Shown: positions 1,343-59,644 of the stretch, in pieces | How positions within the stretch are numbered: position 1 is the stretch's first letter | Layout of the letters: each line of letters begins with the position of its first letter | Source of the DNA: Schmidtea polychroa | Taxonomy: Eukaryota | Direction of reading: 5' to 3' | Length of the DNA: 64,000 nucleotides | Assembly (NCBI GenBank): GCA_044892525.1 | Contig: CM097885.1 | Location: 162,502,001 to 162,566,000 of the forward strand | Notes under the pieces: generated by a model | Database searches by the model: none | Seen by the model: the letters and a program-made list of their open reading frames with translations, nothing else | Told to the model about the DNA's origin: nothing | Program-made: the position numbers and the translations under genes

Positions 1343-2381
1343 CTAGTATATTGCTCCGATCATTGCCTCCCGTGTCGAAGCATGTACTTTTGGGTGCTGA
1401 ATCTCCTCATATTTGTCTTCTGCATAGTCTGAATACTCCAATGGCATCATCTCATCATTAGGTTCAATTGCTGCAATTGTTCTTCTTGGATTGTTGATCT
1501 TTTGTTGATAGCTTGTGGTTCGATGGGCATAATAATTATTGTTTCTCATGTTTGAATTAGTTTGAAACTTCCTTCTTTCCAAATTTGTAAAGCAGTCAAT
1601 CTCCTTATGTCCACGTAAGTGACATCTCTGGCATTGAATCGTTGAACATTCTCGCCGTACGTGGCCTTCAACTCCGCATGCAAAACACGTAATTTTCTTT
1701 TTCATTTGGCATTCTCGACTCACATGACCAATTTTCTTGCATGTCCAGCATTCCAATTGTCGGTTACTGACGTTTCGCTGCTTGAAATTATTATTTCCGT
1801 TTACCATTCCTCTTTGAGCAACATCTCTGTAGCTTCTGTAGTTTTGAACAACCGGTGAAGTCTTCACAACATTAACATGGCCCATAATTTTGTTTACCTT
1901 TTCTAATTTCTTTATTGTCGCTTTTATTTCTTCTGATGTTTTCAAATCTTTCATCTCGATCTCTTTTTTAACTTCTCGATCTCTTACACAGTTTGTAAGC
2001 AGGCATTTTTCTATTTCTTCTTCATCCCATTTGTGCGCTATTAATTTCTTTGTCATCTTTTTAATTTTCTCTATAAAAGTTTCGGCTGAATCTGATCCTT
2101 GTTCATAACTCAAAGCTTCTTTTAGATCATCCATTAATGATGTCGGTTTTGAAAATGCATATCGAAGTTTCTCTTCCATAGTTTTCCTTCGGCTGCTTCA
2201 TAATCTTCCATTAGCGATCTGTCAAGTAATGTTGTAGTTAATATTACTTGCATCCTAATTGTTGTTTTTGTCGCGCCAAAAAACCTTTGACAATCCTTGA
2301 TAAAATTTTCTAAATCATCGCCTTTGTGAAATTTCTCAGGATTAGTCTGCTTATCAATAAATCCGTGGTCGTGGTCGCCAT
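1343..2381 (-). mobile_element. Ty3/gypsy gag with three CCHC zinc knuckles, frameshifted near the N-terminus
   Basis: CWTCKKIGHVSREC, CFACGVEGHVRREC, CQRCHLRGHKEIDC in ORF 1343-2179; upstream gag-like frame NPEKFHKGDDLENFIKDCQRFF is offset by single-base indels; ATG at 2381 overlaps the LTR/PBS junction. Confidence 0.9.
2368..2380 (-). promoter_or_regulatory. Primer binding site (TGGCGACCACGAC, tRNA-Arg-like)
   Basis: TGG-initiated motif directly after LTR-terminal ...TCTAACA; tRNA identity from recalled 3' ends. Confidence 0.65.
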
Positions 2382-3864: not shown

Positions 3865-3964
3865 TGTTACAATTCAGAAAATGACCAAATTCAAATTTTT
3901 ATTTTCTTGTTTTTATCACAAATTAAAACAAGAATAATAATATTAATTCTTTAATATTATTACA
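3865..3964 (-). repeat. 3' LTR (100 bp, TGTAAT...GTAACA)
   Basis: Identical over 90 bp to 10429-10518. Confidence 0.9.
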
Positions 3965-4239
3965 TGTCTCTCTCTAGTGTCCATTCGCCGTAAAGGTTCG
4001 GAGGTCTTCTTGATCTCTGACTTCTCACTCGGTTATAGCCGTCGGGCATAGTCTCCGTTAAGAGAGAAGGCTGATTAAAAATTGTCCTCGGCGTTCTCCT
4101 GAGAAGTAAATGTTTTTTCTGTTGCTTTTTTGGTGCCTGGGGAGTATATCTGGTTATTGCTTGATAGTCGTAGGACAGGCTCCTCTCCCTCGACGTCCAT
4201 TATCCACGACATGTTTCTTCCTTTTGGCATAAGATATTG

Positions 4240-5655
4240 CTAATTTGTTAACTCATGATTGGAGTACGGCTTGTATCCGACTGATTGGCCTTGGTCGAAT
4301 GTGCTCACTATTGGTCTTCTAATCTGCCTTCCAAAAACCATTTCCGCCGGAGATTTACCATAATAGTTTGCTGAGATGCGATGATAAAATAACATCTTCT
4401 GGAGGAAGACGTCAAATTCCATATGACACTGGCTTAGCTTCCAACATTTGATCCCCTTCTTTATTGTTTGGACAGCTCTCTCTGCCCTCCCATTTGCCAT
4501 TGGAAAGTAAAGCGGAGATTCTATCTTTCGAGCTCCTTGATTCTCAATCCATGCTAAACATTCTTTTGATGTAAACTCAGGAGCGTTGTCGGATACTATG
4601 CATTCTGGTATTCCGAATCTGGTGAATACTGTTCGTAGGCATTTGATGACGTTTTCAGTTGTGCGTTCTTTGGTTCTAAAGGCTTCGATCCATCCCGATC
4701 CTGAATCAACGATTATTAAAATGTTTCCGACGTCTCGGAAGTACGCCCAATCTATGTGAAGTCTTTCAAAGGGTGTGGCGTTTGGCCACTCGTGGACTGT
4801 CTTCTGTTTCTGGGGGCGTAATGTAGAACATATTTCACATTTTTTCACATATTGTTCGATGTCTCTCGTTATACCAGGCCACCATGCTACGTTTTGAATC
4901 ATCCTGCAGGATGATTGGATGCCACTGTGAGATTCCTTGTGGAACGAATCTATCGCCTTTCTTCTTAAACGTTCTGGTATGAATAGACGAGATCCTTTAT
5001 ATAGCATTCCATTTTCGATTGAGAGAGATGCTGAAACCGCCTTAAATGAGAATTCATACTGACTGCATTTTGACCATTTTCCACGTTTTACCCTGTTCAT
5101 AATTCCTTGTATACGAGTGTCTAATTGTAGCTCACTTTTTACTTCTTGGGGTTTTAAAATTGTTTGAAAGACGACACTGTGCATTCTAGCATAGCTCAAT
5201 GTCTTAAAATCGACCGCTTGATTACTAAATCGTAATCTCGTCAATGCATCCGCATGAGTAATTTCTTTTCCTGGAACATGTGTAATGATGTAATCATATT
5301 GCATCAGATTTAAAGCCCATTTCGTAATTCGCAGAGAAGTATGATCGGGTATTGCTTGATTACTTCCTAATAAATATATGAGCGGGCGGTGGTCAGTTTG
5401 TAATGTAAATTTTCGCACTAATAGAAAGTGGCCTTATCTTGAAACTGACCAGACTATGGCTAATGCTTCTCTCTCTATATTAGAGTAGTTCTTTTCTGCT
5501 TCCGATAATGTCCTCGAGACGAATATGACTGGATGTCCTTCTTGTGTGAGGACTGCTCCTATGGCTTCTTTCGATGCATCTGTGGTTAATGTTGCTTCTT
5601 TTTTTAGACAATACGATCTAACTATGGGATGGGAACTTAGTTCCGTTTTTAGCTT
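4240..5655 (-). mobile_element. RNase H + integrase of the Mag-like element (one in-frame stop)
   Basis: LTTDASKEAIGAVL, YSNIEREALAIVW, TDHRPL, HSG..CEIC zinc finger, FERLHIDWA, IVSDNAPEF, NGRAERAVQT. Confidence 0.95.
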
Positions 5656-5659
5656 ATCT

Positions 5660-8600
5660 GCTCTCTTCTGATATAGTGTAGCTCCTTGTTGTCTTCTTCT
5701 AATTCTGCAGGGGTTACGTTCTTGTTGATGAAGCTTTTCAATTGCTCCATGTTTTGAACGAACTCTTTGATGTCGTCGACGCTTGGTTCCGAATGGCCTA
5801 TCTTTTCCAACAAACGCTTTTTAGATTCACTGTTGTTGGGCGTAGGTGGGGAAGAGAAAAGTATACATGCATTTCTATCACGCCTATCAAACCTCATCAT
5901 TTCGTTTAGGCACTCCCCCTACATACTCCACATGATCATTCGCATATTCCCACGTATGAGCCCGTGGTGATGTTCCACGTTGGTGCTGCTCACACGGGTC
6001 GGAAAAAGTTAGCAGGTGAGCCCCTGCCTTAGGACTACTCCTAACCCTTTTCTCGGTACGGGTCCTACGGTGCCTTAGAAGGACTTACCCATGCTTCACG
6101 CATCATTCGGTCCACCCTGGTCCAAAGGGGACGACGTTCCAGCTTCTGCTACTCCTTCAGGATCCTCCACTCATGAAAATTCAATCATAGCCAATCATAC
6201 ATATAATTAACGAAATCGGAAAACAAGCGAACAGCTGTATTAGAACAAAACATCAAAATACACTCAAAATTATGTAAGTAGACACAAAACATTAACGACT
6301 TGTACCAAATAATGTCACTCCTTCGAGTTCGTTCATGGTAGTAGGGGAATCGGGACTTGAGAGAAAACTCACTGTGAGAATGCTTCTCCTTCCGCGAGCA
6401 TCTCGTCGATGTCAACGGGCAACCGGCGATCTTCGAGGAATTTGATACTGCCGGCCGGAACTACCCGGAACACTTCTTTGGTAGGAATGCAATGAGTAAC
6501 GGTAATTTCTTGGATTGTTGATTTGGCTGCGAATAATGATGCCTCAAGCGCAGCCATGGCATTTCTGCGCTTCTGATTCTTTTCCGAGCGCGTCGGCCGC
6601 TTACGCTTTCGATGGGGAAGGGTAGTTGCTAGTGGGGGCTGAGTGAGGTGTGGCCCGAGTATTGGAGCCAAGATAGGGTCCGAGGGTCCACCAGCCATAG
6701 GCCGATAACCAGAGAGAACTGGGGCGGGAATTGGTGGCAATTGTGGACCATGCCCCTTGCAATTAGTTACTGACGATGATTCAGCTGATTGGTGGTGCCC
6801 GGGGAACACATTAGTCCCCTCTTGTATTGGGTATTCGTGAACTCGCTTCGCTATCTCTGCTTCGGAGTATACTTTATGTAGTGCCTCTGATTGGGCTTTT
6901 ATGGTTAGCCGCTGGCATCTACTCTCTTCCAGGAGACTGTCACGGCAGTGCTCCAGACGTAGAATCTTACTCTTCTCCTCTTTCATCTGTGGCGGGGAGA
7001 ACCACGTTCCCTCATAGAGGTCAATTCTCTTCTTTAATTCCCCAATGTACAAGTGCAACTGTGCGATGTCTGCATTTTTGTCCGAACACGAGAAGCATGG
7101 ACGGAGATCTTTTCTGGACTGGATCGGTGTAGTCATCTGAAGATAAAGAAGGTTTCCATTAAGGCGGGGTTGCGAACAGCTTTCCCTCATGATTATTTAG
7201 TTCCCTCAACATACAATTTCGGTGACCCTCGATCGGTCTCCGCTCGGAGATGGTCCTTTAAAACCATCGTTTACTACGACCGCTCATATTCACATCAACG
7301 TAAACCATGCAAGATTAAAAGAAAACGGGAGTCATAAATAAAACACTTTATTATATTAGCTATGTACTGTATATCTCCTACATGTTGTTGATTTATCTAA
7401 GTTATTCTGCTAATTTTCGGGAAAACCTTCGCTTTTATAATTATAACATTTAAATTTTCCGTTGTTTGTTATCGGTGACAATTTTATTCAATATCGTGAC
7501 CTATTGAGAGTCGTTGGGTCTGAATGTCACAGGGAGTGAAATGACTATCGCTTGGAGTACTCGACCTCCCCGTACCAGAAATGAGAATTTGAAAAAACTC
7601 GTCGAGAATTTTAATTATTACTTCGAATTATCTAAAAGTTCGTTTAAATTAGCGGCGTTAGCGTAGTCATGAAAACCCTAACTAGGTCGTCAATTCATTC
7701 CTACTCTGTGCATGTATGTGAGTATGCGTATATTTCACTGTGTTAAGATTATAGTATGCCGGTATTACTCTTACCCACGGCTAGACAATTCTCGTTGAAA
7801 TTAATCTCCCTAAATGATTTCGATGTCGCTGTCTATGTTCGCACACACAGTCTCACACTGTTACATAATTACGTCATTTTCCTACCTGAGTTACTACGGT
7901 GGATCGGCTTGCTTGTGTGCATCATTGGACACACTGATGATTTTGCATGGCGTGGATACCTGATTTGATACTAGAAATATTCAGTTAGATCTATCAACAC
8001 AGTGTTTCGAATTTGGAGTTTTATTATCGCCTTGCCAAGTTGGAATTATGAGTGAGTGATTATAAGGTCTACTCGATGTTTATTTCTGCTAATCTCTATC
8101 AAGCGCCGTTACTGGACCTTCATGGCCTCGTTATCCGGGTATTGGATGTGCTCAGGCGAATGCTTATCGGTCGTCTACGACTAATTTCCAGCAGGCCAAG
8201 ACTAAAAGATAATTTCCCTAGTTTGCTGACCTCAGATTTTCTCAAGGCTGTCGTGAATATTTACATTCACTATCGGATGATTTTCATGTGTCGTATAGGT
8301 TCTACTATTAGCGACGATAAGGCCTGTCAAGATTGATTGTAGAGTCTGATTAAAGCCGAGAGGATGGATGTACTCGCTAATGCTCTAGTAGTTCAAATCT
8401 CTGAGGAAAACTAGAGACAGTTTATACAGATCTGTCTGGGATTTTCCTTTGCAGCCGAAAACTATGATCCCTTCATAATCAATTCACCGAAATTCGAAAG
8501 TTTAAAACAATAATCATGCCGAATTGGAGCATAATGAAGTACGGCAGTACGTGGAAATGAAGATTCTGTCTCATGTCTTTTCCGGAAAGTTTCAAACGGA

Positions 8601-9979
8601 GTTATTATTTGTATCAATTGTCGCAATTCTGTCTCTCCTATGGATGGAAATTTTCTTATGCCGATCGTCGATATCACTCGGTGGTAGATTCTCCATTGTT
8701 ATGTATCTACATCGCTCACCAGATGTCCTCACCCCTCCTGACTCACCCAAGCACAGCATGCATCGCTGCCGCCGCACTTGGACCGTCAGGAAGGACGATT
8801 CCAACCCCTCAGATTTCTATCTTCTTCATCGAAAACAATCATCGCAAATAAACAATAAATTCGTCCGACAATTCAATATTAACGGAATATTATGATTATA
8901 TAAAACAGTTAGTTACCCGGCGACCACGCCGTCCGAAACCCGAACATGACACAAAGTCGGAATAATCCTCGTACACTTTATTTTCCATTCTCAGTGGGAT
9001 TTAAATTCTCGATTCGATGTCTTTATTTTCATTACTCGTCTACGAGTATCATCTAGCCCATTCATTCGCGTTTCGGCATCATGTCCGAATTTCAGACGAC
9101 ATCGTCGCCGGTCGCATGGAGAGAGAGAACATCTTTATAATCAAATAGAAAAATTTATTAAAAATAAATTATATTGTTCATTCCTTTTTATATAAAAACA
9201 AAATTAAAATATGCATCATACTTACAATACGTTTCCTTCGAGAGTATTGGAAAAATATCGGTTGAAGTTTTCTGTTCCCAGGTGAATAATATTAATGCTC
9301 TGTGGAAATCTCGATAACTGTATGAATAGTGTTTCTTGAGTATAGTCCTTGCGAATTGATTTAATGAAGTTTGCTGTAGAGTTTGGTTAAAAAGTGGTGG
9401 TTAACAAGTTAAAATTTTACCTGTAGAGTTTGGTTAAAAAGTGGTACTCTACAGATATTTTCCGTTTCTTTTATATTATTTTCTGTCCAATCAGGACGCG
9501 GCTTGCGTGTAATATTATTATTTATTACTATTTTTATGTTTTTTAATGCAATAAGGTATATTTTAATGACTTTTCTCTATTTTTATTATTATTTTATTTA
9601 TTTTTCTATTTTTTATTATTTCCCTCCTGTTTTTCCTGTGACTTTATTGTTTTTTAGTTATAGTCTAATTTTTTGTTTTAATTAGTTTATGTATTTTTTT
9701 GATAATGATTTATTTTTATTTTATTTCCTAATTTCTGGTTTATTTTTCTTACATTTATTATTTTATTTCCTTATGCTATTATGTGTGGTGCGTTATTTTC
9801 TTTTCTCATCTTGTTTTTCATCTTTTATTGTTTCCATTGGTTATTTTATTCCTTTTATTTCTGTTATGTTTATCTAATTTTATTTGTTCTTCTATTTTTC
9901 GCGCTTTTCGTGCAATTTATTTTATCCCCCTTATTTATTCTTAACCGGTTTTGCAATACTCTCGAAGCTTGGCCCAACA
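5660..9979. mobile_element. Nested fragment of a different LTR family (TGTTGGG/CCCAACA terminus at 9979) carrying accessory ORFs
   Basis: Gag frame breaks at LHDS|TGTTGGG (9979); other junction with RNase H near 5660; A-rich (minus) LTR-like segment about 9000-9979; orientation unresolved. Confidence 0.65.
6369..7190 (-). CDS. Unknown LTR-associated accessory protein, copy 1 (CxxC, coiled coil, TWFSP, Pro-rich linker, basic patch)
   Basis: 273 aa open frame; homologous segments at 18426-18780 and 60094-60743. True start uncertain. Confidence 0.7.
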   Translation of the reverse strand: MRESCSQPRLNGNLLYLQMTTPIQSRKDLRPCFSCSDKNADIAQLHLYIGELKKRIDLYEGTWFSPPQMKEEKSKILRLEHCRDSLLEESRCQRLTIKAQSEALHKVYSEAEIAKRVHEYPIQEGTNVFPGHHQSAESSSVTNCKGHGPQLPPIPAPVLSGYRPMAGGPSDPILAPILGPHLTQPPLATTLPHRKRKRPTRSEKNQKRRNAMAALEASLFAAKSTIQEITVTHCIPTKEVFRVVPAGSIKFLEDRRLPVDIDEMLAEGEAFSQ

Positions 9980-10428
9980 CTGTCATGTAATCCTGCAATT
10001 AGTGACATTGTAATCATGTCTTCTGTTGGATTTGTTGATTCCTTTAGTTTGGAGAATTGACAGAGTTCGGCTCCCTTTCTTAGTCTGAGAATGAAATCGC
10101 TGATTCCTTCTAATTCCTTCTGCTTTAATGAGAAAAATTTATTTCTTTCTACTATCACTAGTCTTGTCTTTGGTTGCAAGAACGATTTTATAGTTCTTTC
10201 GATTTCTTCGTATTTGACTGTTTGAATATTTCTCGGGGACAGCATTGATATGACTTTGCCAAGGGCCTCGAACCCGCATACGGCAATGAAATTGTCTGTT
10301 ATTACATTCTGTTTATCCGAATCAACCCATTTGTTAATTCGAGTCATTGCACTGAATGTCATCATCCATGTTTGACATTGATCTGCATTTGTGAGATCTA
10401 ATACTGGAAATCCTGCTCGTGACGCCAT
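9980..10428 (-). mobile_element. gag N-terminal part of the Mag-like element, truncated by the nested LTR
   Basis: MASRAGFPVLDL..., ERNKFFSLKQKELEGISDFILRLRKGAELCQF is typical retrotransposon gag. Confidence 0.85.
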
Positions 10429-10518
10429 TGTTACAATTCAGAAAATGACCAAATTCAAATTTTTATTTTCTTGTTTTTATCACAAATTAAAACAAGAATA
10501 ATAATATTAATTCTTTAA
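10429..10518 (-). repeat. 5' LTR lacking its outer 10 bp
   Basis: Matches 3865-3954; TATTATTACA missing, replaced by target-site sequence. Confidence 0.9.
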
Positions 10519-12632: not shown

Positions 12633-14208
12633 TTAAAAATATTGAAACTCTTGTTTTTCCAAATCACGTTTGAAAATTTTCAACTTCATTTCAAATGCTT
12701 TTATAACGTTAAAAGCCTCGTCAACGGTTTTTCCAAAACCTTGCAACTTAGTGTTAAGTTCATTTAGATGTGAAGTAAAATCTGTAAAGAACATTAGTCT
12801 GCTGAGCCAGTCAACATCAGTTAACTCTGAATACTTCTGTTTGTTTACTTCCATAAACATTCGAATTTCATCAAGGCATTCCACGAAACGTTCCAGCACA
12901 CGGCCTCTGCTATTGTACATTAGTAACCCAGAGTGAACGGACTGGACTTCATTTAACAGCAGTTCAAATTTTTTCTTATTCAAAGCACGAGCAGTAATGA
13001 AATTTACAATTTTTGTTACAATTTTCATAACATCTCTAAGTTCCTTCAAACCGGATTTTGCACACAAGGCTTCTTGGTGCACAATACAGTGGGTGTCCAA
13101 CATGTTTCGTAAACAAATTCACGAAACCCGCATCTTTTCCAGTCATACTTGGTGCACCGTCAGTCGTTACAGAGACTATTTTATTTACGTCAAAATCTGC
13201 ATTTTTAAGTTCATTCACGACTTTTTGGCATATTTCAGCACCCGTTGTTGTTCCAGATATTTTGGTTAGTTTTATTAGTTTCGTTTTCTTTCAAATATCT
13301 AGCAATGATGGCTAATCGAGCAGACGATGTTACATCAGTACTCTCGTCCAGGCAAATAGAGAATGCCTGACATAACTTGATGTCTTCTTTTAATTGATTC
13401 TCAATGTTTGAATTCAAGTTAATTATTCTCTCTTTTACTGTATTTCGACTAATTGGCAGATCTTTTATTCGCTGAAAATTTTTTTCTTTATTTGGAAAAT
13501 CTTCAAACAAATATGTCACACATTCTAACCAAGTTTCTTTGATGTAATTACCATCACTGCTTAGCTATTATTTTGGAAACTTCGAAACTTGCAGACACTA
13601 AGTTAGATGTACTTTTAACAAACTTTACAAACGAACAGGATTGTAAATTTTCATTTTTTAACTGGCGCAATATATATTCTTTTTGTTCATCTTCGCTTTT
13701 GCCAAGAAGCCACTTGTGATTACTTTCATAGTGGTTTAACTGAAGATGTTCGACAAACAACGCTTTCAGAACACAAGATACACAATGCCTTACTTTGTTT
13801 GTTGATTACTCCATATCGTTCAGTCCACCGATCTTGGAATTCCCTGCCACTTCCTTCTTCTGAAAGTTTTATTTTTTTTGCTTTGAACACATTTTATTTA
13901 TCAAAATTTCTATTTCTAAATTATTAAATATTTATAAAAAAATTCAATCTTTCACAAATAATAATGTCAACAAGATGTCTGCATCATCAAATTCGTGCGC
14001 ATCTTAACTTGTTTATTTTTACTTGTAATACAAATGCGGAATATACAAAAAAATGATAGAAAATAATTTATAGATTTAATCATAAAAAAATATATATTCT
14101 GCCATCTAAAATTTACACAAATTTGTTTTATCTCAAATGTTTGGCGAGCCACACAAAATCGTCTCGCGTGCCACTTTGGGTACGCGTGACATAGGTTTGC
14201 CAGCGCTG
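12633..14208 (-). mobile_element. hAT Buster/GTF2IRD2-like transposon, 3'-truncated, frameshifted transposase
   Basis: TIR CAGCGCTGGCAAACC at 14208 with nnnTAnnn flank; ALCILC zinc finger, LDESTDVTSSA, TTDGAPSMTG, HCIVHQEALCAK, HLNELNTKLQG in several frames. Confidence 0.9.
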
Positions 14209-14913: not shown

Positions 14914-14990
14914 CTTCACAATAGTGTTGTAATAAGCACTGTGTTATCAGTATTTAGCTTGCTGAGTCAATTGTATCATTGTGAAAATAT

Positions 14991-15895
14991 TGTTGGGGTT
15001 CAACAAGAGAGGCACAAAAATGAGGTGAAAATTGACAAAAACACCAAATTCAGAATAAAAATTTAAAGTACAAAATATTAATTAAAAATCAAAAATTTTA
15101 AAAAATGAATATTTTCTGGGGGAAACTGGTATGGGCGGATGCGAAATAATGAGACGAGTTCAGCTATAATAAAATAAAATCAATGGGGGGTCCCTAAAAG
15201 GAATAAATTACAAAAAACAAAAATTAATTAGAAATTAATTAACTAATGGAAAACCCGAGCTAATGGGAAACCTGAGCTAATGGAGAACCCGAGCTAATGG
15301 GAAACCCGATACAATGGAAAACCCGAGCGAATTGAGAAATCCAATTTCGGGAAGGCAATTAATTTAGCCGGAGAAATCCAATTGCGGGAAGGCAATTAAT
15401 TTAGCCGGATAAAATAAAAGAGCCGTCAAAGAAAATGAACAAATTCCCTTCAATTAAATTAGATCTCCAAGAGGAAGCCCGGGGGGAAATAGGACCAAAG
15501 ATAATTGGCAAAAATAAAGTCAATTATTAAACGAGTATAAAAGCAACTGGCAAGAAAACAAAATGCCAGTTGGTCGAAGAAAAGAAAATAGAAGTTTGAA
15601 GAGAGCGAAAAGGGAAATATTAAAGTTAGTAGAAATTAAACCATTTAAAAATCGAACGTACCAGAAAGGGACATCTCCCGTTGGAAGATCTACCCCTGCG
15701 TGAGATTTGTTAATAAATTGAAAAGTGCAGACAAAACCTGATTGTATCAAGTGTGAGTAAACTAATACAAGTGTAAAAGTGTAACTGCATCAGTGTCAAT
15801 AAAGATTTTGTGTTGGGTTATTTATTTATTTATTTATTTGGAAAAGAACACAAAGGAGTCAGACCGTAGTACCGACTTGCATTAAAAACCCAACA
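14991..15895 (+). repeat. 5' LTR (905 bp, TGTTGGGG...CCCAACA)
   Basis: About 99% similar to 24326-25199; five 17 bp and two 37 bp internal tandem units. Confidence 0.95.
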
Positions 15896-15899
15896 TATT

Positions 15900-15917
15900 T
15901 GGTGAGCCCGACGTGAT
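15900..15917 (+). promoter_or_regulatory. Primer binding site, tRNA-Trp-like (TGGTGAGCCCGACGTGAT)
   Basis: One mismatch to the recalled tRNA-Trp PBS TGGTGACCCCGACGTGAT; 4 nt after the LTR. Confidence 0.8.
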
Positions 15918-16211
15918 CAAAAGTCGGTGAAAATTTGTTGAAATTGTGATAATATTTGAGTGATACCGAAGAATAAAAAGATCGGTGAAAATTTGTTGAG
16001 ATTAGTAAAGTATCGGAAAAATTTGGAAAAAGATAATAATAATTAAATAAATAAATATTGAAGTGAAACGTTTATTTGAAAGTGGTGAACATTTATTTGA
16101 GAATTATTAAAGTGGTGATTTTATAATTGAAGCAAAGTGGAAAAATTTGTAACGATTGATTGTTGAAAAGTCAAAATTAAAACGAAAGGTAAATTTTGTA
16201 ATTGTAACACT

Positions 16212-18425
16212 TTGAATTTTAGACGAGTAAAGCCTGTGTTGACCCGATCATTTTATAAATTGAGAAGCCAAACACTAATAGAGAATTTAATGAGTACCCA
16301 AAGACTAACCAATAATAAAAATAACAACGACGAAACACCTGTGTCCACGGTGGGCAACGGCAAGGAAGGCAATGATTATGCGAGTTGTCAAAAACTACCT
16401 GTGGATCAGTACGGTGGAGATCCGCTGGAATTTGTCGATTTTATGGCAGATTACTATATGTATGCGACGGCCTATGGATGGAGCCAATCGATAATGGTGC
16501 AAAGATTACCGCTATACCTAAAAGGAGCAGCCAGAGAAGCGTGGCAACAAATTGATAAAAGAATAGTAGCAAATGACTGGACCAAGTTGAAAGACGCGTT
16601 AGCCACGAAATTAATCGGAGGGGATATCAAACGGATAATGCGACAGAAATTCTATAACCGCGTACAAAAGCCAGAGGAATCGGTAAGTGAGTTTGCTTAT
16701 CATTTATCAACTCTTGCAGAGAAAGCGTTCGAAGTGAAACCAGAACAGGCCGAGATGGCAAAGCAGGTAAAAGAATTATTGCAGGATCAATTCTTGTCAG
16801 GAGTAAAGAAAGAAATTAAAAAGGCTTTATGCTATGTTGATTTTAATGACTTTGATGAATTGATCAAAAAGGCAATGAAAATTGAGATAATTTAAAAAGC
16901 ACACAGTCAAAATCAGAGTCGTTTGCAGTCATCTCAGGCGCAAGCGAAAGATCAGTAACCCCAATTAGAAACAATCGTTTTCAACAAACAAGTAGTCCAT
17001 CACCAAAATTTAGATCCAAATTTGAGTCGAACAAGTCAACAGATATTCAAACAGATGGAAAGGAAGGTCCCATCCAATGTAGTCATTGCCAAAGGATTGG
17101 ACACCATGTTAACCAATGCTGGTTTAAAAATAGAGTACAGAGAAGCCCAATTCCGATTCAGTGTGATAATTGCCAAAGAATGGGACATGACAGCAATCAA
17201 TGCTGGTTCAAAAATAATGTACAACGGAGTCCAAGGCAAATGTGGCCTGATTGGTTAAAAGGAAATGGTGCGAAAAGTTTCACTAAAGCGAACATTAATG
17301 AGCCGAGAACTAATGATAACTTACAATGCTTTAATTGCGGAAGAAAAGGGCATGTGTCACGAAATTGTTTTGCCAGGTCAAGATCAACATCAACATCACC
17401 ATCACCGCAGAGAGATAAAGTAAATCTACAAGGACAAATTCAATGTCATTCATGCAGAAGTTATGGACACATGGCTAGATCATGTCCAAGAAATATGGAT
17501 AAATTCCAAAGGCCCATATTAAAGAAATCGATTAGGTTTCAGAGTGACAAACCGCAGATGGATAATGTAGCTTTTATTCAGCCAGATAATTTTAATGAAA
17601 GAATTGAAAGCGAAGTGAGAGAAATGGGTCGACGTTTGGATCGATTGATGTCAAAGTTTGAATCAGAAGAGGACTACAATAATCACATGATGTATGAGTC
17701 GCAAGAGGAATTGAATGAAAAAGAGTCGAAAAGGAGAGTTATAAAAGATGATTTAGAAAGTGAAAAAGCAACAATGATAATGACCAGAATCGAAAAACTA
17801 ATTGGAAATAATGAAATAGAGTCGGCTAAAGTGATCAAATCGTTGAGAGAATTAAGTCAAATATCTTTGAGTACGAGAAAGATAAAAAGTGTAATTAGCT
17901 TGTGCGTTAACTACTATAATATGAATCCAAAGTATAAAAAAGAAATTAAAGAACTAATGAAAATATTTGGAAAAGCTTTGAGAGAGAAAACTGGGTTAGA
18001 TTCCATCTTGGTGGAAGTAGTAAACGAGATTGATAAAAGTGTATTATGTTGTCGTTGTGAGGCAAATGATTGTGTAAATGATTTAAAGAATAAATTAAAA
18101 GAAAAAAAGGAAGGATGCATGATAGAGTTGAGATTTAATGAGAGATTGTTAGAAAATGACGAATTTTTGGTAGATTGTGGATTTATTCCAGGAAGTACAA
18201 ATGAATTAAAAATGGAAAATGTAATTACTAGTGATGAAATAATGAGTAGTAAAATAATAGACAAAAGGAATTCAAGGGAGATATTAGAGGAATTAAATGA
18301 TGCGTTATATATTGGAGATGAAGATGAAATCAATGAGAAGTTACAGATTATTGAGAAATTAGAAAGGGAGGACAACGATAAACTAAAAATAGTGAATGCA
18401 ATACGACCATATTTACATGTGAAAA
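16212..18425 (+). mobile_element. gag with four CCHC knuckles and long C-terminal extension; frameshift at about 16890; deleted at the protease start
   Basis: Capsid-like QKFYNRVQKPEESVSEFAYHL; knuckles CSHCQRIGHHVNQC, CDNCQRMGHDSNQC, CFNCGRKGHVSRNC, CHSCRSYGHMARSC; ends RPYLHVKT then switches to unrelated sequence. Confidence 0.9.
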
Positions 18426-18780
18426 CCAGCCGCTTCCTCTTGGGCTTATCCTTCGCGGCCGGAGGGTAAATGGCTGCCAACTCCACGGACAACGGCCGGA
18501 TTTGACTTATGGTGGCTCCGTGAACCGCTTGTTCATTGCGTTCGGTTTCTAACGCGCGGAGTTGGAGTTTCAAGGCCCGGATCTCCATCTGATCCTGCGC
18601 GTTTTGAGTCTGCAATTGGAGGACCTGTGTCAACTTCTTCCTCATATCTTGAGGACTAAACCAGGTGCTTTCTAGTTCACGGCACCGTCCCTTGAGTTTG
18701 TCCACTCGTATACGCAGCTCCTCGGCCTGTTTTTGGGCTTCTTCTCTGTCCTTTCGTAGATTTTCGCATAGTTTGATCAC
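18426..18780 (-). pseudogene. LTR accessory protein copy 2 (coiled coil, ESTWFSP), 3'-truncated by the deletion junction
   Basis: LRIRVDKLKGRCRELESTWFSPQDMRKKLTQVLQL aligns with LHLYIGELKKRIDLYEGTWFSPPQMKEEKSKILRL; ends in basic KPKRKR. Confidence 0.7.
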
Positions 18781-18985
18781 TAGATAAATTACAACGATTA
18801 CTGGCTTGCAGCATTCCCCTTGTTCAATATAATAAGGTCAATATCATGCATAACGATACTTTAGCTATTAAATAAGAAATTTATTCAAAAGATATTTTAT
18901 TAAAAAGAGTAACACATGATCCTCAACCAATTTGATTATTTGTCACAATACACGCAATTATAGTAAGTCAATAGTTGGTCCTTGA

Positions 18986-19351
18986 TCACCCTCGGCATTT
19001 GCGGGGCCTCCCTCTCTTTCGTGGGGATGCTATGGCCTCCTCTAGCTCCTCCACGGGCACTCCTTCTCTTTTCGCCCGGATTTGTTACTCGATCTTCCTG
19101 AGTCGCATCTGAGCGGCTTCCACCTCCCAGGCCGCTTGGTCTCGGGCCTCCTGCAGCCGGTTATTCTCCGGTTCCACCTTCACCCACGCCGGGGCATCTA
19201 CTTCGGGGCCTGTCCGGATTACTCGTTCCGTACAATCTAGGTCCCTTCCCTGACCCCACCGATGTATATGGTGCCAGATGTAACGGGTCCGGAGGCGGGT
19301 AATCGTCTGTCGGTGGTTTTCTTCATCGCTGAACTCATCTGATTGGGACAT
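18986..19351 (-). pseudogene. Unknown small AT-hook protein ORF with one internal TAA
   Basis: After acceptor cag|at ATG: MSQSDEFSDEE...LRKIE*QIRAKREGVPVEELEEAIASPRKRGRPRKCRG*. Confidence 0.55.
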
Positions 19352-20284
19352 ATCTGTAGTACAAATATTAACGATCATAACCAATGTGGAAAATATACCC
19401 AAAATAAATAATACTTTAACTACCAAAGTTACTATAAGTAATGTAACTACTTTTAACATGAAATTTTTTATTTAATTTATCGATAAAATTCTTAATCAAT
19501 TAAAAATAAAAAAAACATTTATCTAGATTAAGCATTAATGTTGAAAGGTCCATACCTCGACAAAAAAAAATTCCCTCACTGTCATATTTGTTTAAACTTA
19601 CTATTTCACTATTTATCATTTATTTACCACGAGATGGTAATTTAAAAATCTTTATGTTAAATTTTGTCGAATTCCCGGGAATTAGTAAATTACTACTGAA
19701 TTCGGGCACATCGGGTGATAGGTATTAGTGGCGGGCTTAGTTCTCGTTTACTTACCTCTCCTTGATCGTGCTCGTCATGAGTGGTACAATCGACCTTTAA
19801 GCAGCTCGGGTAATTTATTTATTTACCGCAAATTTTCATTTCTAGGAATGCTGGGTGATGATTTTTCTTGGCTGGAGATAGACGAGTTTAGCTTTGGGAG
19901 ATCGTCGTACGACTCCTCGTTAGGGATTCTCTTTTGGAATTCGTAGTAGTTTTGTATTTATAATTTATTAATCACAATAAAGAAATCTTGGGTATTTTAG
20001 TAATAGTGGTTTGATTCTCTAGTAAACAAATGATATGATTACGATTCATTAATGATTTAGATAGGTATCTCATAGGTTTTGATAATATACTTCCACCCCT
20101 ATCTCCAATTTACTTAGATAGTGTTAACATTTTCTAGAGGGGGGTTACTAAAAATAACTTTTAAGGATTTCGCTCCTTCTTATTGGATCTAAAGGGTTGA
20201 TACTAAATTTGTCTTGGGGCAAATCTTAAATCGATATTTCGATTGGAATATTGATTTTGGTGAGCAATAATTGCTGATAGAGAT

Positions 20285-20415
20285 AACAATAATAATTGTA
20301 ACAATAATAATAATAATAATAATACCATGGTAACAATAGTAGTAATAATAGTAATAATAATAACAAATAATAATAATGGTAATAATAACACTAATGATGA
20401 TGGTTATAATAATGA
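20285..20415. repeat. Degenerate (AAT)n microsatellite
   Basis: Runs of aataat/aacaat/agtaat. Confidence 0.8.
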
Positions 20416-20613
20416 ATATAATTATTTCAATTTGTAATTCATGACTCTAGCAAGATTTTTATAGCCCTAATTCTAACGTCGTATGCTTCGTTGCAGGTCA
20501 TTATCGCTATTTGTACTTTGTGTATTTATAGCCAAGTATTAAATATAACTATCTATAATTCGTATTTATACCTATTTATAGATTATATTTATAATTTATA
20601 TCAAATAACTTTC

Positions 20614-21020
20614 AACCATAACCATTGGGGATTTGTAATTATAATTTATAGATAACATTTATAATTTTATCATTTGTGCTTTTAAGGTTGAAGAGATTAT
20701 TAAAGAGATTCTTTCATTTTTATAGAGTAAAATTTAACCATAACTATTGGGAATTTATAATTATAACTCATATATAACATTTTATCATCGATGTTTCTAA
20801 TACTGAAGCGATTATTAAAGAGATTCTTCCATTCTTATAAGGTAAAAGTTAACCATAACCCTTGGGAATTTCTAATTATAATTTATATATAACATTTTTA
20901 TCATTTATATTTCTAAGATTAAAGGGATTATTAAAGAGATTCCCCTTCATTATTATAAAGCAAAATTTTCCCATAACCATTTGGAATTTATAATTATAAA
21001 TCATATATAACATTTATATC
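20614..21020. repeat. Tandem array, about 3.5 copies of a 115-122 bp unit
   Basis: Units start AACCATAAC at 20614, 20736, 20851 and about 20969; each full unit carries GATTATTAAAGAGATTC. Confidence 0.85.
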
Positions 21021-21584
21021 TTTGTGGTTAAAAATCTATCTATTATCCTTACTAGGTTACCTATTTAGAGTTAACATATACATACATAACTAGATTTATA
21101 TTTTCTGATCTATATACACTTGCTTATGGTCTATTTTTATAGTTAAGATTTATCCGTGTTGTTCATTTATCATTTACCCAAATGTATTAGAGTAGGATTC
21201 CTGATCAATTTGTAATTTGTTTCTGGAGAATTACATTTATGATATCTACATTTACTTTAATTAGCCTATCTAAATTAAACTATACTTATACACATGCCGA
21301 CGATCCTTCTCATTTTATTACTTTACTGTAAATTCTTATTTCAAATTCTAGTTCGGCATCTGTCTAAGTATACTTACAATTACTATTAAGGGTCAACCAG
21401 CTACATGAGTGTGAGTGCAGGATTGTGTCATTTTAGGTACGAGTTCTACTCAATTTAGAACCTTAATGTAGAGTTTTTGTTCGTGATTTTGAATGTGGAT
21501 TTTACATGTGTATTAACTGAAAGTCGGGAAGAATATTGCTTCCATGGCCCCACTGTGACCACTTCCACAAACCTTAGTGTTGTG

Positions 21585-22828
21585 TGTTGAGTCAACCATT
21601 TACGGTCGACCTTACATAAATACAAAGAGTCAGACGGAGGGTTTCCTCGACCTAACTCCATGGCCGGACCATGAAGTAGTTCGACCCCCGAAAGACCCGA
21701 ACAAAAAAAAGGATGATATAATATTAGATTGCTATAATATTGATAATGCATGTGCTATAAAAATTAGATGCAGGACCGAACGACGACGCAGGAATACCAG
21801 TACGCCGTCGAACCTTCGTACATCACTGGAGAAAATCAAAAGCAAGAGACATCAAAAAATGCAATTACTTCGATTCCCCTATATAATTGATAATAAATTG
21901 AAAAGTGATTCACCAATGTAATAAACTCAACAAATAAAATACTCATAAATTGAAAAGGTAATTCATTAATGTAATCAACACATAAAATAATCATAAAAAA
22001 AAATAATTCATTAATATAATAAAAATCAACAAATAAAATGATAACTAATTTAAAAAGTACTTCATTAATGCAATAAAAAAAATCAACAATTCTTACTATT
22101 CTCGTTGGCAATACTTTCTGCAAAAATTGGCATAAAAATAGTGATTGATTGTGACTGAAACGTGTCAGTATATATACCTATTTTGTACACGTGTATGTAT
22201 TGATGCATTAAAACAAACTTGAATTCTTTTTATTCCAGAACTTTCTATTTTGTAATTTCGATATTTTTAATAGCAATTTTTGTGCCATAATTTTTGTTTT
22301 TATTTTTATATTTTTATTCTTTAATTATTTTTCATTAATTTTACGTCCATGATGGATTTGGAACGGTTCCAGAACATTCTATTTCACTTTTAATTTAATT
22401 TTTATTTTAATTGGTGTTTTATGGATTTCTTTTTACGAATTTTCATTTTTATTACTAATTTATTGATTTTGTCTAAATTTTTTTGTTTAAGATAGCTTTT
22501 ATGATGGTCATCGCCATTTTTATGGAATGTTCTGGGTTTTTCTGGAATTTTTTACTGTTCTTACCAGCTTTTAAGTTATTCGAGTTTGTTTCTTGTAACT
22601 CTATGTTTATTTGATCATTTTTTGAGTTAGATTTTGCATGACTTCTTGCTTTTGGTATGATTTTATTTAATTTCGGTGTTTATGCTTTTGTTGTTTTCTC
22701 CTTTAATTAATATTGTTTATTTGATGTAATTTTAATATTTAACTACACTTTTTGTTTTTGCATGTTGTGTACCTACACCTTTCAGTCACAATTCAAGTTT
22801 GGGTCTAGAAGTCAGTTCTAGCCCAACA
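21585..22828. mobile_element. LTR-like segment of another family (terminus CCCAACA at 22828)
   Basis: TGTTGGG on minus starts exactly where the KLHL20 frame breaks; candidate other end TGTTGAGTC at 21585; no matching TSD found. Confidence 0.45.
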
Positions 22829-23159
22829 ATAGCTTTAAAATAAGGACTACATGCAGATAACACAATTCTATGGGCTAAGATTTTTTTTTGACCAACAATC
22901 AAGGCTACGTCACATAATTCGCCGTGTTTTCTTAGTTGATTAATGGATTCCAAAGTAATTTTTGGGTGCTTCTCAGAGAAGTAGCATAATTTGTTAAACG
23001 TATTAGAATTGAATGCACCCCCAGAACATTGATTTCCAGTAATAATCTTTTTCTCATTTTGTTACTGAATTAAAAAAATATGAAGAAAAATAAAATTTCT
23101 TACCTATTAATGAAAAAAAAAGCAGCCAATCAGAAGCCATTTAGTGCATTGGCTAGAAT
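22829..23159 (-). pseudogene. KLHL20: KLHL20/diablo 5' fragment (UTR exon, 39 nt intron, first half of BTB domain)
   Basis: [51 protein letters not shown] versus recalled human [51 protein letters not shown]; GT-AG intron 23065-23103. Confidence 0.9.
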
Positions 23160-24062
23160 CTGAGAAAAAGAAAATATTAAATTATGGAAAAATAAATCGA
23201 ATTACCTAGTTCGGATAGATAATCAAAATTTTCCCTAAATAAAATATCAACATAATAAAATATTTATTTAACATTTTTCAAGATTTACTTCATAAACTCT
23301 TGAGCTGTTGCCGACGATAACTAAATCTAAAATTTATTTTGTTGTTTTACTAATTGAATTTTGTCTTATTTCGCATAGATGATATAATTAGGTAATGGTA
23401 CTTAATAGAGTTTAGATGAGTTTGTAACGATTGAGAAAAAAAAATTATTTTCGGTACAGTTTTCTATGAAGTTTTATGACAAACACATAATTTAGCTCTA
23501 TACAATGCGTCTAAATATTAATTAATAATTTAGCAAAAAATCTCATAGCTGGAAGAACTGATAATATAATATATTTGTTTAAATTTTTGATTCATTTAGT
23601 TATCCCATAAATTTCATGAGCATTGATAGAAAACTTTAAGGAATTACCTTCAGCCGAATTTTTATGAGTGGAATATATCTTGGTTTAAAATAATAATCTA
23701 ACATAGCAATAAATGTTTAAAGGATTCTTTATCATTTTGTTAACAATCATTCTTAATTTATCATATGATTTGTTTGTTATAATGGTTTAGTTTATTAGGA
23801 TTTGTTGATATGTCTTGAAAGGAGGCCACGTGGTATTTTGTAAAAAAATAAAGTAGTACGATTTATCATACTTTGTCGAATTTTCCAATAATAAATGATT
23901 AAGTTTCCCTGCGATTGTTTTAGACGTTCAAGAACTATTTTTAACAATATTTACATAATGATTAGTAACGTCTGTTATCTATGAGTTTTATCTCAGCTTC
24001 CATCTTTCATATCGAAGATTTTATAAATTCACTAAAGTTTTAATTGGAAATTTAAATTAGGG

Positions 24063-24244
24063 NNNNNNNNNNNNNNNNNNNNNNNNNNNNNNNNNNNNNN
24101 NNNNNNNNNNNNNNNNNNNNNNNNNNNNNNNNNNNNNNNNNNNNNNNNNNNNNNNNNNNNNNNNNNNNNNNNNNNNNNNNNNNNNNNNNNNNNNNNNNNN
24201 NNNNNNNNNNNNNNNNNNNNNNNNNNNNNNNNNNNNNNNNNNNN
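24063..24244. other. Assembly gap (others at 34193-34369, 42553-42805, 43457-43711, 48717-48901, 50543-50693)
   Basis: Runs of N. Confidence 1.
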
Positions 24245-24312
24245 TTATTGTTATTACTGTATGGTAAATTAGACTTATTATATACATGCAGATTCGAGGT
24301 TGAATCTAAATT

Positions 24313-24323
24313 AAAGGGGGAGA
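24313..24323 (+). promoter_or_regulatory. Polypurine tract
   Basis: AAAGGGGGAGA 2 nt before the 3' LTR. Confidence 0.85.
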
Positions 24324-24325
24324 TA

Positions 24326-25199
24326 TGTTGGGGTTCAACAAGAGAGGCACAAAAATGAGGTGAAAATTGACAAAAACACCAAATTCAGAATAAAAATTTA
24401 AAGTATAAAATATTAATTAAAAATCAAAAATTTTAAAAAATGAATATTTTCTGGGGGAAACTGGTATGGGCGGATGCGAAATAATGAGACGAGTTCAGCT
24501 ATAATAAAATAAAATCAATGGGGGGTCCCTAAAAGGAATAAATTACAAAAAACAAAAATTAATTAAAAATTAATTAACTAATGGAAAACCCGAGCTAATG
24601 GGAAACCCGATACAATGGAAAACCCGAGCGAATTGAGAAATCCAATTTCGGGAAGGCAATTAATTTAGCCGGAGAAATCCAATTTTGGGAAGGCAATTAA
24701 TTTAGCCGGATAAAAAGTAAAAAGCGCCGTCAAAGAAAATGAACAAATTCCCTTCAATTAAATTAGATCTCCAAGAGGAAGCCCGGGGGGAAATAGGACC
24801 AAAGATAATTGGCAAAAATAAAGTCAATTATTAAACGAGTATAAAAGCAACTGGCAAGAAAACAAAATGCCAGTTGGTCGAAGAAAAGAAAATAGAAGTT
24901 TGAAGAGAGCGAAAAGGGAAATATTAAAGTTAGTAGAAATTAAACCATTTAAAAATCGAACGTACCAGAAAGGGACATCTCCCGTTGGAAGATCTACCCC
25001 TGCGTGAGATTTGTTAATAAATTGAAAAGTGCAGACAAAACCTGATTGTATCAAGTGTGAGTAAACTAATACAAGTGTAAAAGTGTAACTGCATCAGTGT
25101 CAATAAAGATTTTGTGTTGGGTTATTTATTTATTTATTTATTTGGAAAAGAACACAAAGGAGTCAGACCGTAGTACCGACTTGCATTAAAAACCCAACA
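24326..25199 (+). repeat. 3' LTR (874 bp)
   Basis: Copy of 14991-15895 with two fewer 17 bp units, +3 bp and a few substitutions. Confidence 0.95.
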
Positions 25200-26131
25200 A
25201 TATTTATGATATTCAATAAAGTTTTCAGTGTTAATTGTTATCTGTGGGTCAATTAAAGTCACGCTTGGAGTCAGAAATAATTCATTTAATTTAAATTTCA
25301 CCAACGACCCAATACAATCCTCTGGATAACTATTATTAGGATCATATTTATTTTCACTGTGTTCAGTTAATATCTTTCCCGTATAATTATCACTATTAAC
25401 CGCATCCACATCCTCATCGTGATGACCATTAATAAAATTATTGTTATTGGTTCTACCACTTCAATTATTATTATTATTAATATTATCATTTCATTATCAT
25501 TCGCCTATCTTATCTTGGTGAATTTGCATTTTTTCGATTCATTTATTTCCTCTCAGAAGCTTGAAACCAATCGATTGTTAATTTCGCTGATGCGATAAAA
25601 TTTCCCGTTGAGACGAAATTATAATTTATTTTTTTACGTTTTGGCGGTTAAGAGGCTAAAAGATTTGAAAACACTGAACCAAACAGGTGGATAAAGGATG
25701 GTAGACAAAAGAAGGAGAATTACGAAGAGGGTCAACAGAAATACCTAATTAAAGAATGATAGCTAAGGAAGTCAAAACCAATTACGTCAAAAAAAACGAT
25801 TATTGGAGTATATAAGGAAACTCCAAATTCACATAATCGGAAGTAGCCTTAGGTAGGGAAGAAGAAAAGGACAATAGGAGTTGGAGGAATGAAGTCAAGA
25901 AGAAAAAGTGAATTACAAGAGGATCTAAGGAGTCAGAAAGGGAGTATTTAAAGTGTTCGGATCAGAGAGCGGAATCAAATAAAAAGGTGAAACTTATTTT
26001 TAAATCGTACAAGGTCGAGACGTTCCAGAGCGGAGTTCGATCGGAAATTGTGAGAAAATCGTAGTTAACTAAAAGTTATAATTATTTATTGAGCATTGGA
26101 AATTTGCTATAAAACAATTATACGTTGGGAG

Positions 26132-46471: not shown

Positions 46472-47774
46472 AAATTTATTTGTAAAATTATTTTTCGAAG
46501 AAAAGCAATAAAGATTTCAAAATCGGCTTGGAATATTCTTCAACTTGGGATATTGATTTTTCTGTAAATGACAAAGATTTTATAGAGTTTTTTTACCGGT
46601 TTTTCTTCTCTCGTTTATATGGAAGTAAAATTGTAAAGTTTCCACTATTAATATTTATTTTATTTTATATTTTTATTCATTCAATAACATCTGGGAAATA
46701 AATCAATAAAATAATTTAAAATTTTGTAGATTTGTTTTAAAAATTATTTTAAAAATTGAATTTTTAATTTATATATATATATATTAATAATATCAGAATA
46801 ATAATCAATAATTTGATTATTTAACCCGATTAATAAAATAATTTAATCAACAAATTGATCCTTTCTCAAATCCATTTTTAAGAATTTTTTGAGAATTATG
46901 TTGTAAGTTTATCAATTTTATTTTTTATTTAAAATATTTCACAATTATTATTTATTTTATTTTATTTTATTTTTATATTTTTATATTATTATTTTATTTC
47001 CTACATATTATTTTTTTAAAGAACTGTTCAATTTTTTAGAGTTTCATAGATTCATTTATTTTAAAAAATTATTTTTTCTTAAATCAATTTTTTATTTATA
47101 TTTATTTTTTTTACAAATCAAAATATTGATAAATTATTTGAATATTTCAATAAAATAATTAAATCAATAAATTGATTCCTTCTCAAGATCGATTTCTAAT
47201 AATTTTTTGAGAACTTTTTTGTAAGTTTTAAAAATTATTAAAGAAAATTTTCATTGAAATTCATTTGAAATGGGAAAAAAATGTATTGAAAATTTCGAAA
47301 AAAATATTTTAAATGAAATAGTTTTGTAATTGTTAAAAATTGGTTAATAATTTGTTAGTGATTGAAAATAAACATATAAAAAAAGACTGCTCAGGTAGAT
47401 GCTCGAGGTCGGTGGGGGAAAATAGTCGATTTCCTATTCTCATTGTACAAACTAACAAATACGCAGAGGAGCGAATTCTAATTTGTTAGAGCATTATTTT
47501 TGATAACTTTCTTATTTCGCCTCGCCTCCTTAATCCCCGGTTTATCTCCTGAGAGTAATCTGTTTTTTTTTCTTTTGTATTCTCATGAGGCTTAAGAAAA
47601 ACAGGTTGTATTAGAGTCGATTCAAGTAAGATCAAGATGTAATTGAAAATTTTGTGCTATTCCTGATGCGATGATGTATAGTCGAGATGGATGCCTGTTT
47701 TTTGTATGGAAAAATATTTTAATTAAATTTTTTTTGAGTCAAATTAATTTATTTATTTTTAAATTATAGATACA

Positions 47775-48183
47775 ATGTTTCTATCTCAACCGATGCATCC
47801 AACAAACCATTTATCAATGTTTCCCTATTCTCAAGCCTTTACATCATCAGAATGTGGCTATCCAACAATAAATTCCTCCACATATTCCCAATATCCTATC
47901 AGTGCTATTGAACAAGCTTTTTCGGGATTCAATTCGAACGTTAATCTCTCCTCGACATCCGCGGAAAAATCTATTTCAGCAACTGCGGTTGGATCAAGTG
48001 AAACGTGTCTTAATTCTCGAGAAAGCTTATGGACCACAGCGTCAGGCTATCAGCCGCAATTGGCTCCACAGTATTCTTTCGACCACAACGCTATGACTGC
48101 TGCAAGTGCGTTGGCATTAGCAACAGGCGGATCGTCTTTCCCGAGTTCCCCGTATTTCCCCCAGCATCCAGCATTATATCAAG
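47775..48183 (+). CDS. otx: Otx coding exon 1 (Ser/Pro/Ala-rich)
   Basis: Ends CAA G|gtgagt. Confidence 0.85.
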
Positions 48184-59228: not shown

Positions 59229-59644
59229 TAGGAGAGCTACATTCACATCCAAAATGTGTATGCGATCCACTTTTTTAAAAAAAAAAAAAAAGTACTCCTC
59301 CATTTCTTCGCAATAATGATAAGTCTTGGCTTTTTTATTTAGCATTTTTTTATTTAGCATTTTTTTATTTAGCATTTTTAAACAAAAGTAATTTAACAAA
59401 AAAGCTTAAGAAAATTTTTCACTTTGTTACACCAAAATTTTTTTTATTTAGCATTTTTAAACAAAATTAATTTAACAAAAAAGCTTAAGAAAATTTTTCA
59501 CTTTGTTACACAAAAATTTAAGCATAAAACAGAAATTTTATATAAAATCTAAATTTATATAAAAAATATTTTTTTTATGAAGATCTACTAAAAAATCCTT
59601 CGCGATCTACCGGTAGATCGCGATCGACCTTATGGACACCCCTG
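59229..59644 (+). mobile_element. hAT MITE copy 1 (right TIR only)
   Basis: Ends ...GGACACCCCTG followed by GTGTAGTC; near-identical to 62986-63394. Confidence 0.9.

Follow-up and report, generated by a model that had tools for sequence, protein, structure and literature searches.

The window analysed here, a single stretch of 64 kb of DNA, is AT-rich (GC content of about 26-44% in 2-kb bins) and is interrupted by six N runs of 151-255 nt each, which is typical for a gapped assembly. Transposon remains crowd its whole length, among them a gag ORF with zinc knuckles (1343-2179, minus strand), an integrase/RNase H ORF (4240-5418, minus strand) and a reverse-transcriptase fragment (53145-53624, minus strand); scans of the 64 kb for tRNA genes and Rfam families found none. 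Within this setting a pair of long terminal repeats (LTRs) encloses a gag-like gene, a series of unrelated sequence blocks and a short piece of a KLHL20/diablo-type gene.

A truncated KLHL20/diablo-type exon

The gene piece occupies positions 22829-23064 of the minus strand (236 nt) and derives from coding exon 1, of which neither end is preserved. Its counterpart in a related protein, P0010, is the stretch of residues 18-94, covering the N-terminal region and the first ~40 positions of the BTB domain. The Pfam BTB model aligns over positions 2-42 of 110 with residues 41-80 of the minus-strand frame (E=1.6e-13), and the PDB matches of this frame are generic BTB domains. A sequence-only reading of this DNA had described half a BTB domain; the domain is present, its extent being about 40 of 110 profile positions rather than half. 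In a search of 1.8 billion representatives the 111-aa BTB protein P0010 was the outstanding match (E=1.8e-39, 90% identity over 77 residues). The best full-length relatives, P0039 and P0042, share 69% identity with the fragment, other full-length matches reaching at most 50%, and P0039 is recognised as KLHL20 by the match of its Kelch domain to PDB 6gy5 (E=5e-207). The earlier assignment to KLHL20/diablo is thereby confirmed.

P0010 is encoded on a public contig of 1228 bp, L001, which is genomic DNA of a related species. Its layout is an exon 1 of 107 codons followed by BTB and BACK exons, with introns of 61 and 62 nt, and by eye the BTB/BACK exons resemble the corresponding region of KLHL20. 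Homology between the window and L001 is limited to 22829-23064 (local score 106 versus 9.8 +/- 1.4 for shuffled sequence), where identity is 75% at the nucleotide and 90% at the amino acid level. Both ends are abrupt in this comparison, and the 3' flank scores 10 versus 9.2 +/- 1.4 for shuffles, indicating no homology.

The open frame around the fragment (22789-23061, minus strand, 91 codons; 22786-23061 with the stop that closes it) has no in-frame ATG, and an in-frame stop codon lies directly upstream, abutting the first homologous codon. The ATG at 23057 opens another frame, as the earlier reading had stated. That reading also had the frame ending exactly at an LTR-like terminus: homology does stop there, at 22829|22828, and the open frame itself continues through 13 unrelated codons before reaching a stop. 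With no start codon, a stop just upstream and another 13 codons past the junction, the fragment cannot give rise to a protein, and the BTB match at 22829-23064 should not be annotated as a gene or as the start of one.

The rest of the gene is missing from the window. Searches with tblastn using P0010, P0015, P0023, P0039 and P0042 returned one hit only, and no further BTB, BACK or Kelch sequence was found on either strand of the 64 kb; of the complete BTB-BACK-Kelch architecture, BTB positions 2-42 of 110 are the sole part in the window. The 17 N-terminal codons that P0010, P0180 and P0181 have in common are likewise missing. The view that this is not the native KLHL20 locus therefore holds.

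The fragment differs from L001 in the manner of a gene under selection. There are 63 differences among 231 aligned bases, of which 45 fall at third codon positions, and at the codon level 42 differences are synonymous and 8 non-synonymous. Over the last 53 codons no second position has changed and only one conservative replacement is seen. This pattern marks the fragment as a recent copy or remnant of the species' functional gene, and its sequence suggests that it is young, or was under selection until recently.

The minus-strand stretch upstream of the fragment (23065-23159) is AT-rich with no homology detected to L001. It had been read as a UTR exon together with a retained 39-nt intron (GT..AG, 23103-23065), and neither feature is supported by comparison with the orthologues. 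The 5' flank scores 12 against L001 versus 10.2 +/- 1.4 for shuffles, a score reached by 64 of 500 shuffles, and the site of the proposed intron holds the 17 conserved coding codons in P0010, P0180 and P0181. In L001, the one locus with DNA, these codons continue unbroken into exon 1. Moreover, the window contains 67 GTAAG sites, and after 35 of them a YAG follows at intron-like distance, so that GT..AG brackets of this size occur at chance level. In the orthologue no true intron begins until 12-13 codons past the 3' breakpoint of the fragment, which is thus contained within a single exon. For a piece that nowhere leaves coding exon 1, a genomic and an mRNA source cannot be told apart, and the argument that intron retention pointed to capture of genomic or antisense sequence falls away. 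Just upstream of the fragment there is also a palindromic pair, CCAAT...ATTGG (23123-23152, minus strand), which may have prompted the earlier promoter/UTR idea.

At the 3' end, the point where homology stops (22829|22828) is followed by TGTTGGG, the 7-mer that opens both LTRs. The joint ..TAT|TGTTGGG looks like an LTR end made by integrase, its flank being similar to the ATAT that adjoins the window's three LTR ends of this kind. The 7-mer (22828-22822) forms the first part of a hairpin-forming stretch of 32 nt directly 3' of the fragment (22797-22828, minus strand), which folds as DNA at -8.1 kcal/mol versus -1.8 +/- 1.2 for shuffles (z=-5.2). TGTTGGG occurs at 14 sites in the window versus 4.3 expected, and a sensitive self-BLAST found no LTR body past the 7-mer at 22828, returning only A-rich low-complexity matches. 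The motif may be what is left of an LTR whose integration hit the exon, or else the footprint of a repair event; with the 7-mer being part of a local hairpin, the supposed LTR-like terminus could also be a coincidence. An apparent match to 9456-9925 dissolved on alignment, and the TGTTGGG at 9979 falls within a gag ORF, leaving a recognisable second LTR unsupported. Other types of carrier were considered as well: no inverted repeats bracket the fragment as in TIR-type carriers (Pack-type DNA transposons), and for Helitron-type capture, judged by eye, neither a CTRR end after the 3' hairpin nor a Rep/helicase gene among the listed ORFs was seen.

The divergence pattern of a selected gene, together with a 3' joint that resembles an LTR integration junction, would also fit a native KLHL20 locus broken by insertions, the fragment being its visible remainder between two transposons. 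We regard this as scarcely credible. Two transposons would have to have landed within 236 nt of each other in a gene that is highly conserved, and no other gene part is found in the 22.8 kb downstream or elsewhere in the window on either strand. The introns of the orthologue are just 61-62 nt and its exons are packed within a few hundred bases; in addition, the first 17 conserved codons are missing and an in-frame stop takes their place next to the fragment.

A pol-less LTR pair with a mosaic interior

The fragment lies between two direct repeats on the plus strand, a 5' LTR of 905 nt (14991-15895) and a 3' LTR of 874 nt (24326-25199), each with the termini TGTTGGG...CCCAACA. Their alignment has 865 matching and 6 mismatching positions (99.3% identity), plus one 34-nt indel (a tandem unit) and one of 3 nt, in agreement with the earlier claim of paired LTRs at 14991 and 24326. 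A primer-binding-site-like stretch, read from the sequence, begins with TGG 4 nt past the 5' LTR (15900-15918). At the other end, the last 81 nt of the element interior (24245-24325) include a polypurine tract (24314-24324) that adjoins the 3' LTR, showing that the 3' repeat is no solo LTR. Long direct repeats, TG...CA termini, a primer-binding-site-like stretch and a polypurine tract are the structural marks of an LTR retrotransposon, and all were found at 14991-25199.

The element is flanked directly on its 5' side by ATAT (14987-14990) and directly on its 3' side by ATAT (25200-25203), a candidate target-site duplication. A related LTR at about 50976-51703 (plus strand) has the tandem-repeat block in common with this pair, and its 3' terminus CCCAACA at 51703 is followed by (AT)n; an N run (50543-50693) adjoins it. 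ATAT thus adjoins each LTR end of this type that the window contains, three in all, and the (AT)n past 51703 suggests that this group of LTRs prefers ATAT as its target. For this reason the matching flanks are weak evidence.

Downstream of the 5' LTR lies a gag-like coding region (16212-18469, plus strand) in two reading frames with one break. It matches Retrotrans_gag (PF03732, E=4.8e-8) and contains CCHC zinc knuckles (PF00098, E=3.6e-8), and its relatives reach 57-64% identity. Its long C-terminal extension, acidic/basic in composition, can be aligned to ORF 2 of contig L003 (E=5e-25) and, being common to this relative, is genuine family sequence. The stretch concerned (17180-18469, plus strand, against 1014-1850 of L003, a metagenome relative) is charged and conserved; in L003 the extension also touches Rad60-SLD, a Pfam model of ubiquitin-like type, at E=4.9e-5, narrowly missing the curated cut-off. 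Three public proteins, P0006, P0008 and P0009, combine the N-terminal part of gag relatives (57-87% identity) with truncated host domains (DAG kinase, DTW and Ras-type GTPase). They may be real chimeras of this element family, which would hint that it often ends up in such fusions, or assembly artefacts.

No ORF between the LTRs encodes protease, reverse transcriptase, RNase H or integrase; gag domains are the only ones present, and the copy is therefore non-autonomous. The pol domains of an autonomous LTR retrotransposon such as Ty3-gypsy (Metaviridae) are lacking, and gag domains alone give no basis for assigning a superfamily. With gag on the plus strand and the KLHL20/diablo-type fragment on the minus strand, the description of a host-gene fragment lying antisense inside an LTR-bounded unit without pol stands.

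Past gag the interior turns into a mosaic. The base composition switches at about 18400, from a purine-rich plus strand before this point to a GC content of 52-61% with the opposite skew after it, and between ~18400 and the polypurine tract no element-like sequence was found. The first foreign segment (18400-19459, minus strand) consists of two coding-like blocks, GC-rich (52-61%) and antisense to gag, which belong to an unnamed dispersed repeat family with further copies in the window at about 6369-7190 (minus strand) and 60064-60357 (plus strand). The copies have a short coiled-coil motif in common (pairwise E-values of 3e-6 and 7e-20) and a GC content of up to 61% versus ~29% for the genome, with no homologue in Pfam, the PDB or the protein database. 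A possible similarity of this family to P0009, in the N-terminus of that protein, proved not significant. Satellite-like tandem repeats follow at 20593-21023 (period about 115-122 nt, units 76-83% identical), then short tandem repeats at 21923-22090 (period about 50 nt) and a stretch at 22148-22792, A-rich on the minus strand, between 23-nt inverted repeats that are 87% complementary. From the far side of the fragment's flank to the next N run the sequence (23160-24062) is AT-rich and non-coding, with only low-complexity matches elsewhere in the window. The N run itself (182 N, 24063-24244), which may be a gap or masked sequence, separates the 3' LTR from the fragment.

Origin of the composite and likeness to known capture systems

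The reading we favour, to which we give an even chance, is that the non-functional piece of KLHL20/diablo-type exon 1 is a reverse-oriented passenger in a non-autonomous LTR retrotransposon copy spanning 14991-25199. The element's own sequence from ~18400 on would have been replaced by a patchwork of foreign pieces, and this patchwork, including the exon piece, would have been put together before the last integration of the copy. The composite would then have moved as one unit with enzymes supplied by autonomous relatives. The integrase-like look of the 3' joint suggests that an LTR element with this 7-mer at its terminus had first inserted into the exon, or into a copy of it. The resulting exon-LTR junction would then have been brought in by illegitimate recombination, either through template switching in reverse transcription or through break repair. 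Assembly before the last integration would account for a scrambled interior alongside LTRs that differ at 6 of 871 aligned bases. The satellite units, being only 76-83% alike, are older than the LTR divergence, which favours an interior that pre-dates integration; if there was one insertion, this order of events is very probable (17-24% divergence between satellite units versus 0.7% between LTRs).

The fragment's identity and limits, the paired LTRs, the missing pol and the patchwork interior are direct observations; we infer a single insertion, as well as a capture that preceded the last transposition and the route by which it took place. Signs of one insertion are the primer-binding-site side and the polypurine side in the same orientation, the 99.3% LTR identity and the matching flanks, the last of which loses most of its weight through the apparent ATAT preference. 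Against the passenger reading stand the run of 182 N between fragment and 3' LTR, the orientation of the foreign coding pieces and the single known copy. Template switching from a packaged mRNA would normally yield sense inserts, whereas the two foreign coding pieces in this interior both run opposite to gag. As to copy number, exact-protein look-ups of four window ORFs gave no second copy of the composite, the 91-aa frame, searched against proteins clustered at 90%, gave only orthologues (at most 79% identity), and among metagenome contigs a 26-nt pattern scan and a gag-based locus search each gave 0 matches. Thus neither the element nor the junction turned up a second time, be it in the window or in the searchable collections.

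The same interior might instead have been built in place. A fuller element would have integrated, and its pol region would then have been lost and replaced through nested insertions, deletions and filler-DNA break repair, including the 236 nt of KLHL20 exon, so that the element never mobilised the fragment. The region is a dense pile of transposon remnants, the fragment ends abruptly with no matchable transposon hallmark, and at the level of DNA the antisense orientation needs no special pleading. The inverted duplication at the junction forms a hairpin, and such duplications resemble the snap-back templated insertions found at repaired breaks. This account must, however, squeeze all these events into the time of 6 LTR differences per 871 bases, with internal satellite units already 17-24% diverged, and none of the blocks can be recognised as a complete nested element that has ends of its own. 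We consider it rather unlikely.

A further possibility, to which we assign a minor share of the probability, concerns the two halves themselves. The 5' LTR with gag and the polypurine tract with the 3' LTR may come from different truncated copies, inserted separately or joined across the N run by the assembler, with repeat-rich host DNA and a decayed duplicate of the KLHL20 5' end between them. The N run at 24063-24244 falls at exactly the place where the fragment would have to connect to the element's 3' end, it is one of six such runs (151-255 nt) in the window, and identity of 99% is normal between copies of a young family. Matching flanks would be expected for separate insertions too, given the apparent preference for ATAT. 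Yet two complementary truncated copies would be needed, in the same orientation and only 5.6 kb apart, with flanks that match, and a primer-binding site on the 5' piece and a polypurine tract on the 3' piece are the expected ends of one element.

The passenger reading would place the composite within a phenomenon that is already known, the capture of gene fragments by LTR elements. LTR-mediated retroposition is documented for mammals, birds, fish, mosquito and flies (Tan et al. 2016, Genome Res; PMC5131818). In these cases an incomplete copy of a host gene, lacking both its ends, takes the place of internal ORFs between two retained LTRs; one chimera can draw on several parental genes, and the retrocopies, which are co-transcribed with the LTR element, can act as non-autonomous elements (PMC5131818). 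The present case is alike in that host sequence replaces the element interior with both LTRs kept, although here an N run intervenes, and in that several unrelated pieces are combined. It differs in orientation, the mechanism of template switching on packaged mRNA leading one to expect sense copies, whereas the fragment is antisense to gag; the study reports the strand of transcription, not orientation within the element (PMC5131818). The criteria for such retrocopies also include exon-exon junctions and microsimilarity where the pieces are fused (PMC5131818), whereas the piece described here lies inside one exon and is known from one copy.

Drosophila telomeric retrotransposons offer a second comparison. 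Their captured host fragments of 140-235 bp, from nxf2, aub and piwi, are associated with piRNAs against the parent gene, small RNAs having been measured for aub and piwi (PMC13534243), and the nxf2 fragment is reported to be present in all TART copies (Ellison et al. 2020, as cited in PMC13534243). Here too a short host coding fragment (236 nt versus 140-235 bp) sits in a retrotransposon, and by analogy it is conceivable that transposon-derived antisense RNA could target the parent gene. The Drosophila elements are non-LTR elements, whereas the element described here has LTRs, and the piRNA-pathway genes captured there suggest a plausible benefit for the element, whereas the gene captured here is KLHL20. 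KLHL20 is a Cullin-3 substrate adaptor and is not known to be linked to transposon control.

Non-autonomous LTR elements that depend on others also have precedent in MaLR, mobilised by MERVL (as cited in PMC5131818). LARD/TRIM-type and MaLR elements, whose interiors are scrambled or non-coding, resemble the copy in keeping LTRs, primer-binding site and polypurine tract while lacking enzymes, with a presumed dependence on autonomous relatives; they differ from it in that the copy keeps a long gag-like gene and is the only one known. In maize, the LTR retrotransposon Bs1 carries several cellular gene fragments, which are expressed as one chimeric ORF. Cellular gene pieces thus occupy the interior of an LTR element in both cases, but here there is a single dead antisense fragment.

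Transcription from the 5' LTR would yield an RNA in which 236 nt are complementary to the KLHL20 mRNA, and this antisense stretch could in principle feed small-RNA pathways, an effect that we infer purely from the arrangement. The fuller version of this idea, in which a mobile, multi-copy non-autonomous LTR element produces an antisense KLHL20 transcript that feeds piRNA or siRNA pathways and so modulates a Cullin-3 adaptor gene, seems to us very unlikely. If true, it would extend to LTR elements what the TART-nxf2 and aub/piwi captures represent, with a target outside the piRNA pathway. If the composite moves as a unit, it would add a further animal example of LTR elements shuffling pieces of host exons, and would be unusual through its antisense passenger, which would make the element's transcript complementary to the mRNA of a conserved ubiquitin-ligase adaptor. 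Should the composite be a local patchwork or an assembly join, it would be ordinary debris of a repeat-rich region.

Other repeats and open frames in the window

The remains of a second LTR-type element with a disrupted interior lie at 3865-10518 (minus strand), between identical 90-nt repeats at 3865-3954 and 10429-10518; they include a gag-like ORF (9931-10428) and the RNase H/integrase ORF at 4240-5418. Two neighbouring ORFs of 156 and 94 aa (12633-13519, minus strand) resemble part of a hAT-type transposase by eye and have no Pfam match at E<=0.01. Towards the end of the window, direct repeats of ~400 nt (59229-59635 and 63008-63394) are 94% identical, contain tandem units of ~80 nt and enclose ~3.4 kb with one copy of the unnamed GC-rich family. 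This unit may be a terminal-repeat element; its ends are not TG..CA. Finally, two open frames rich in Ser, Thr, Pro and Asn (47763-48188 and 58181-58792, plus strand) have no Pfam match and a GC content higher than their surroundings, and may be host exons, for example the low-complexity N-termini of regulatory proteins.
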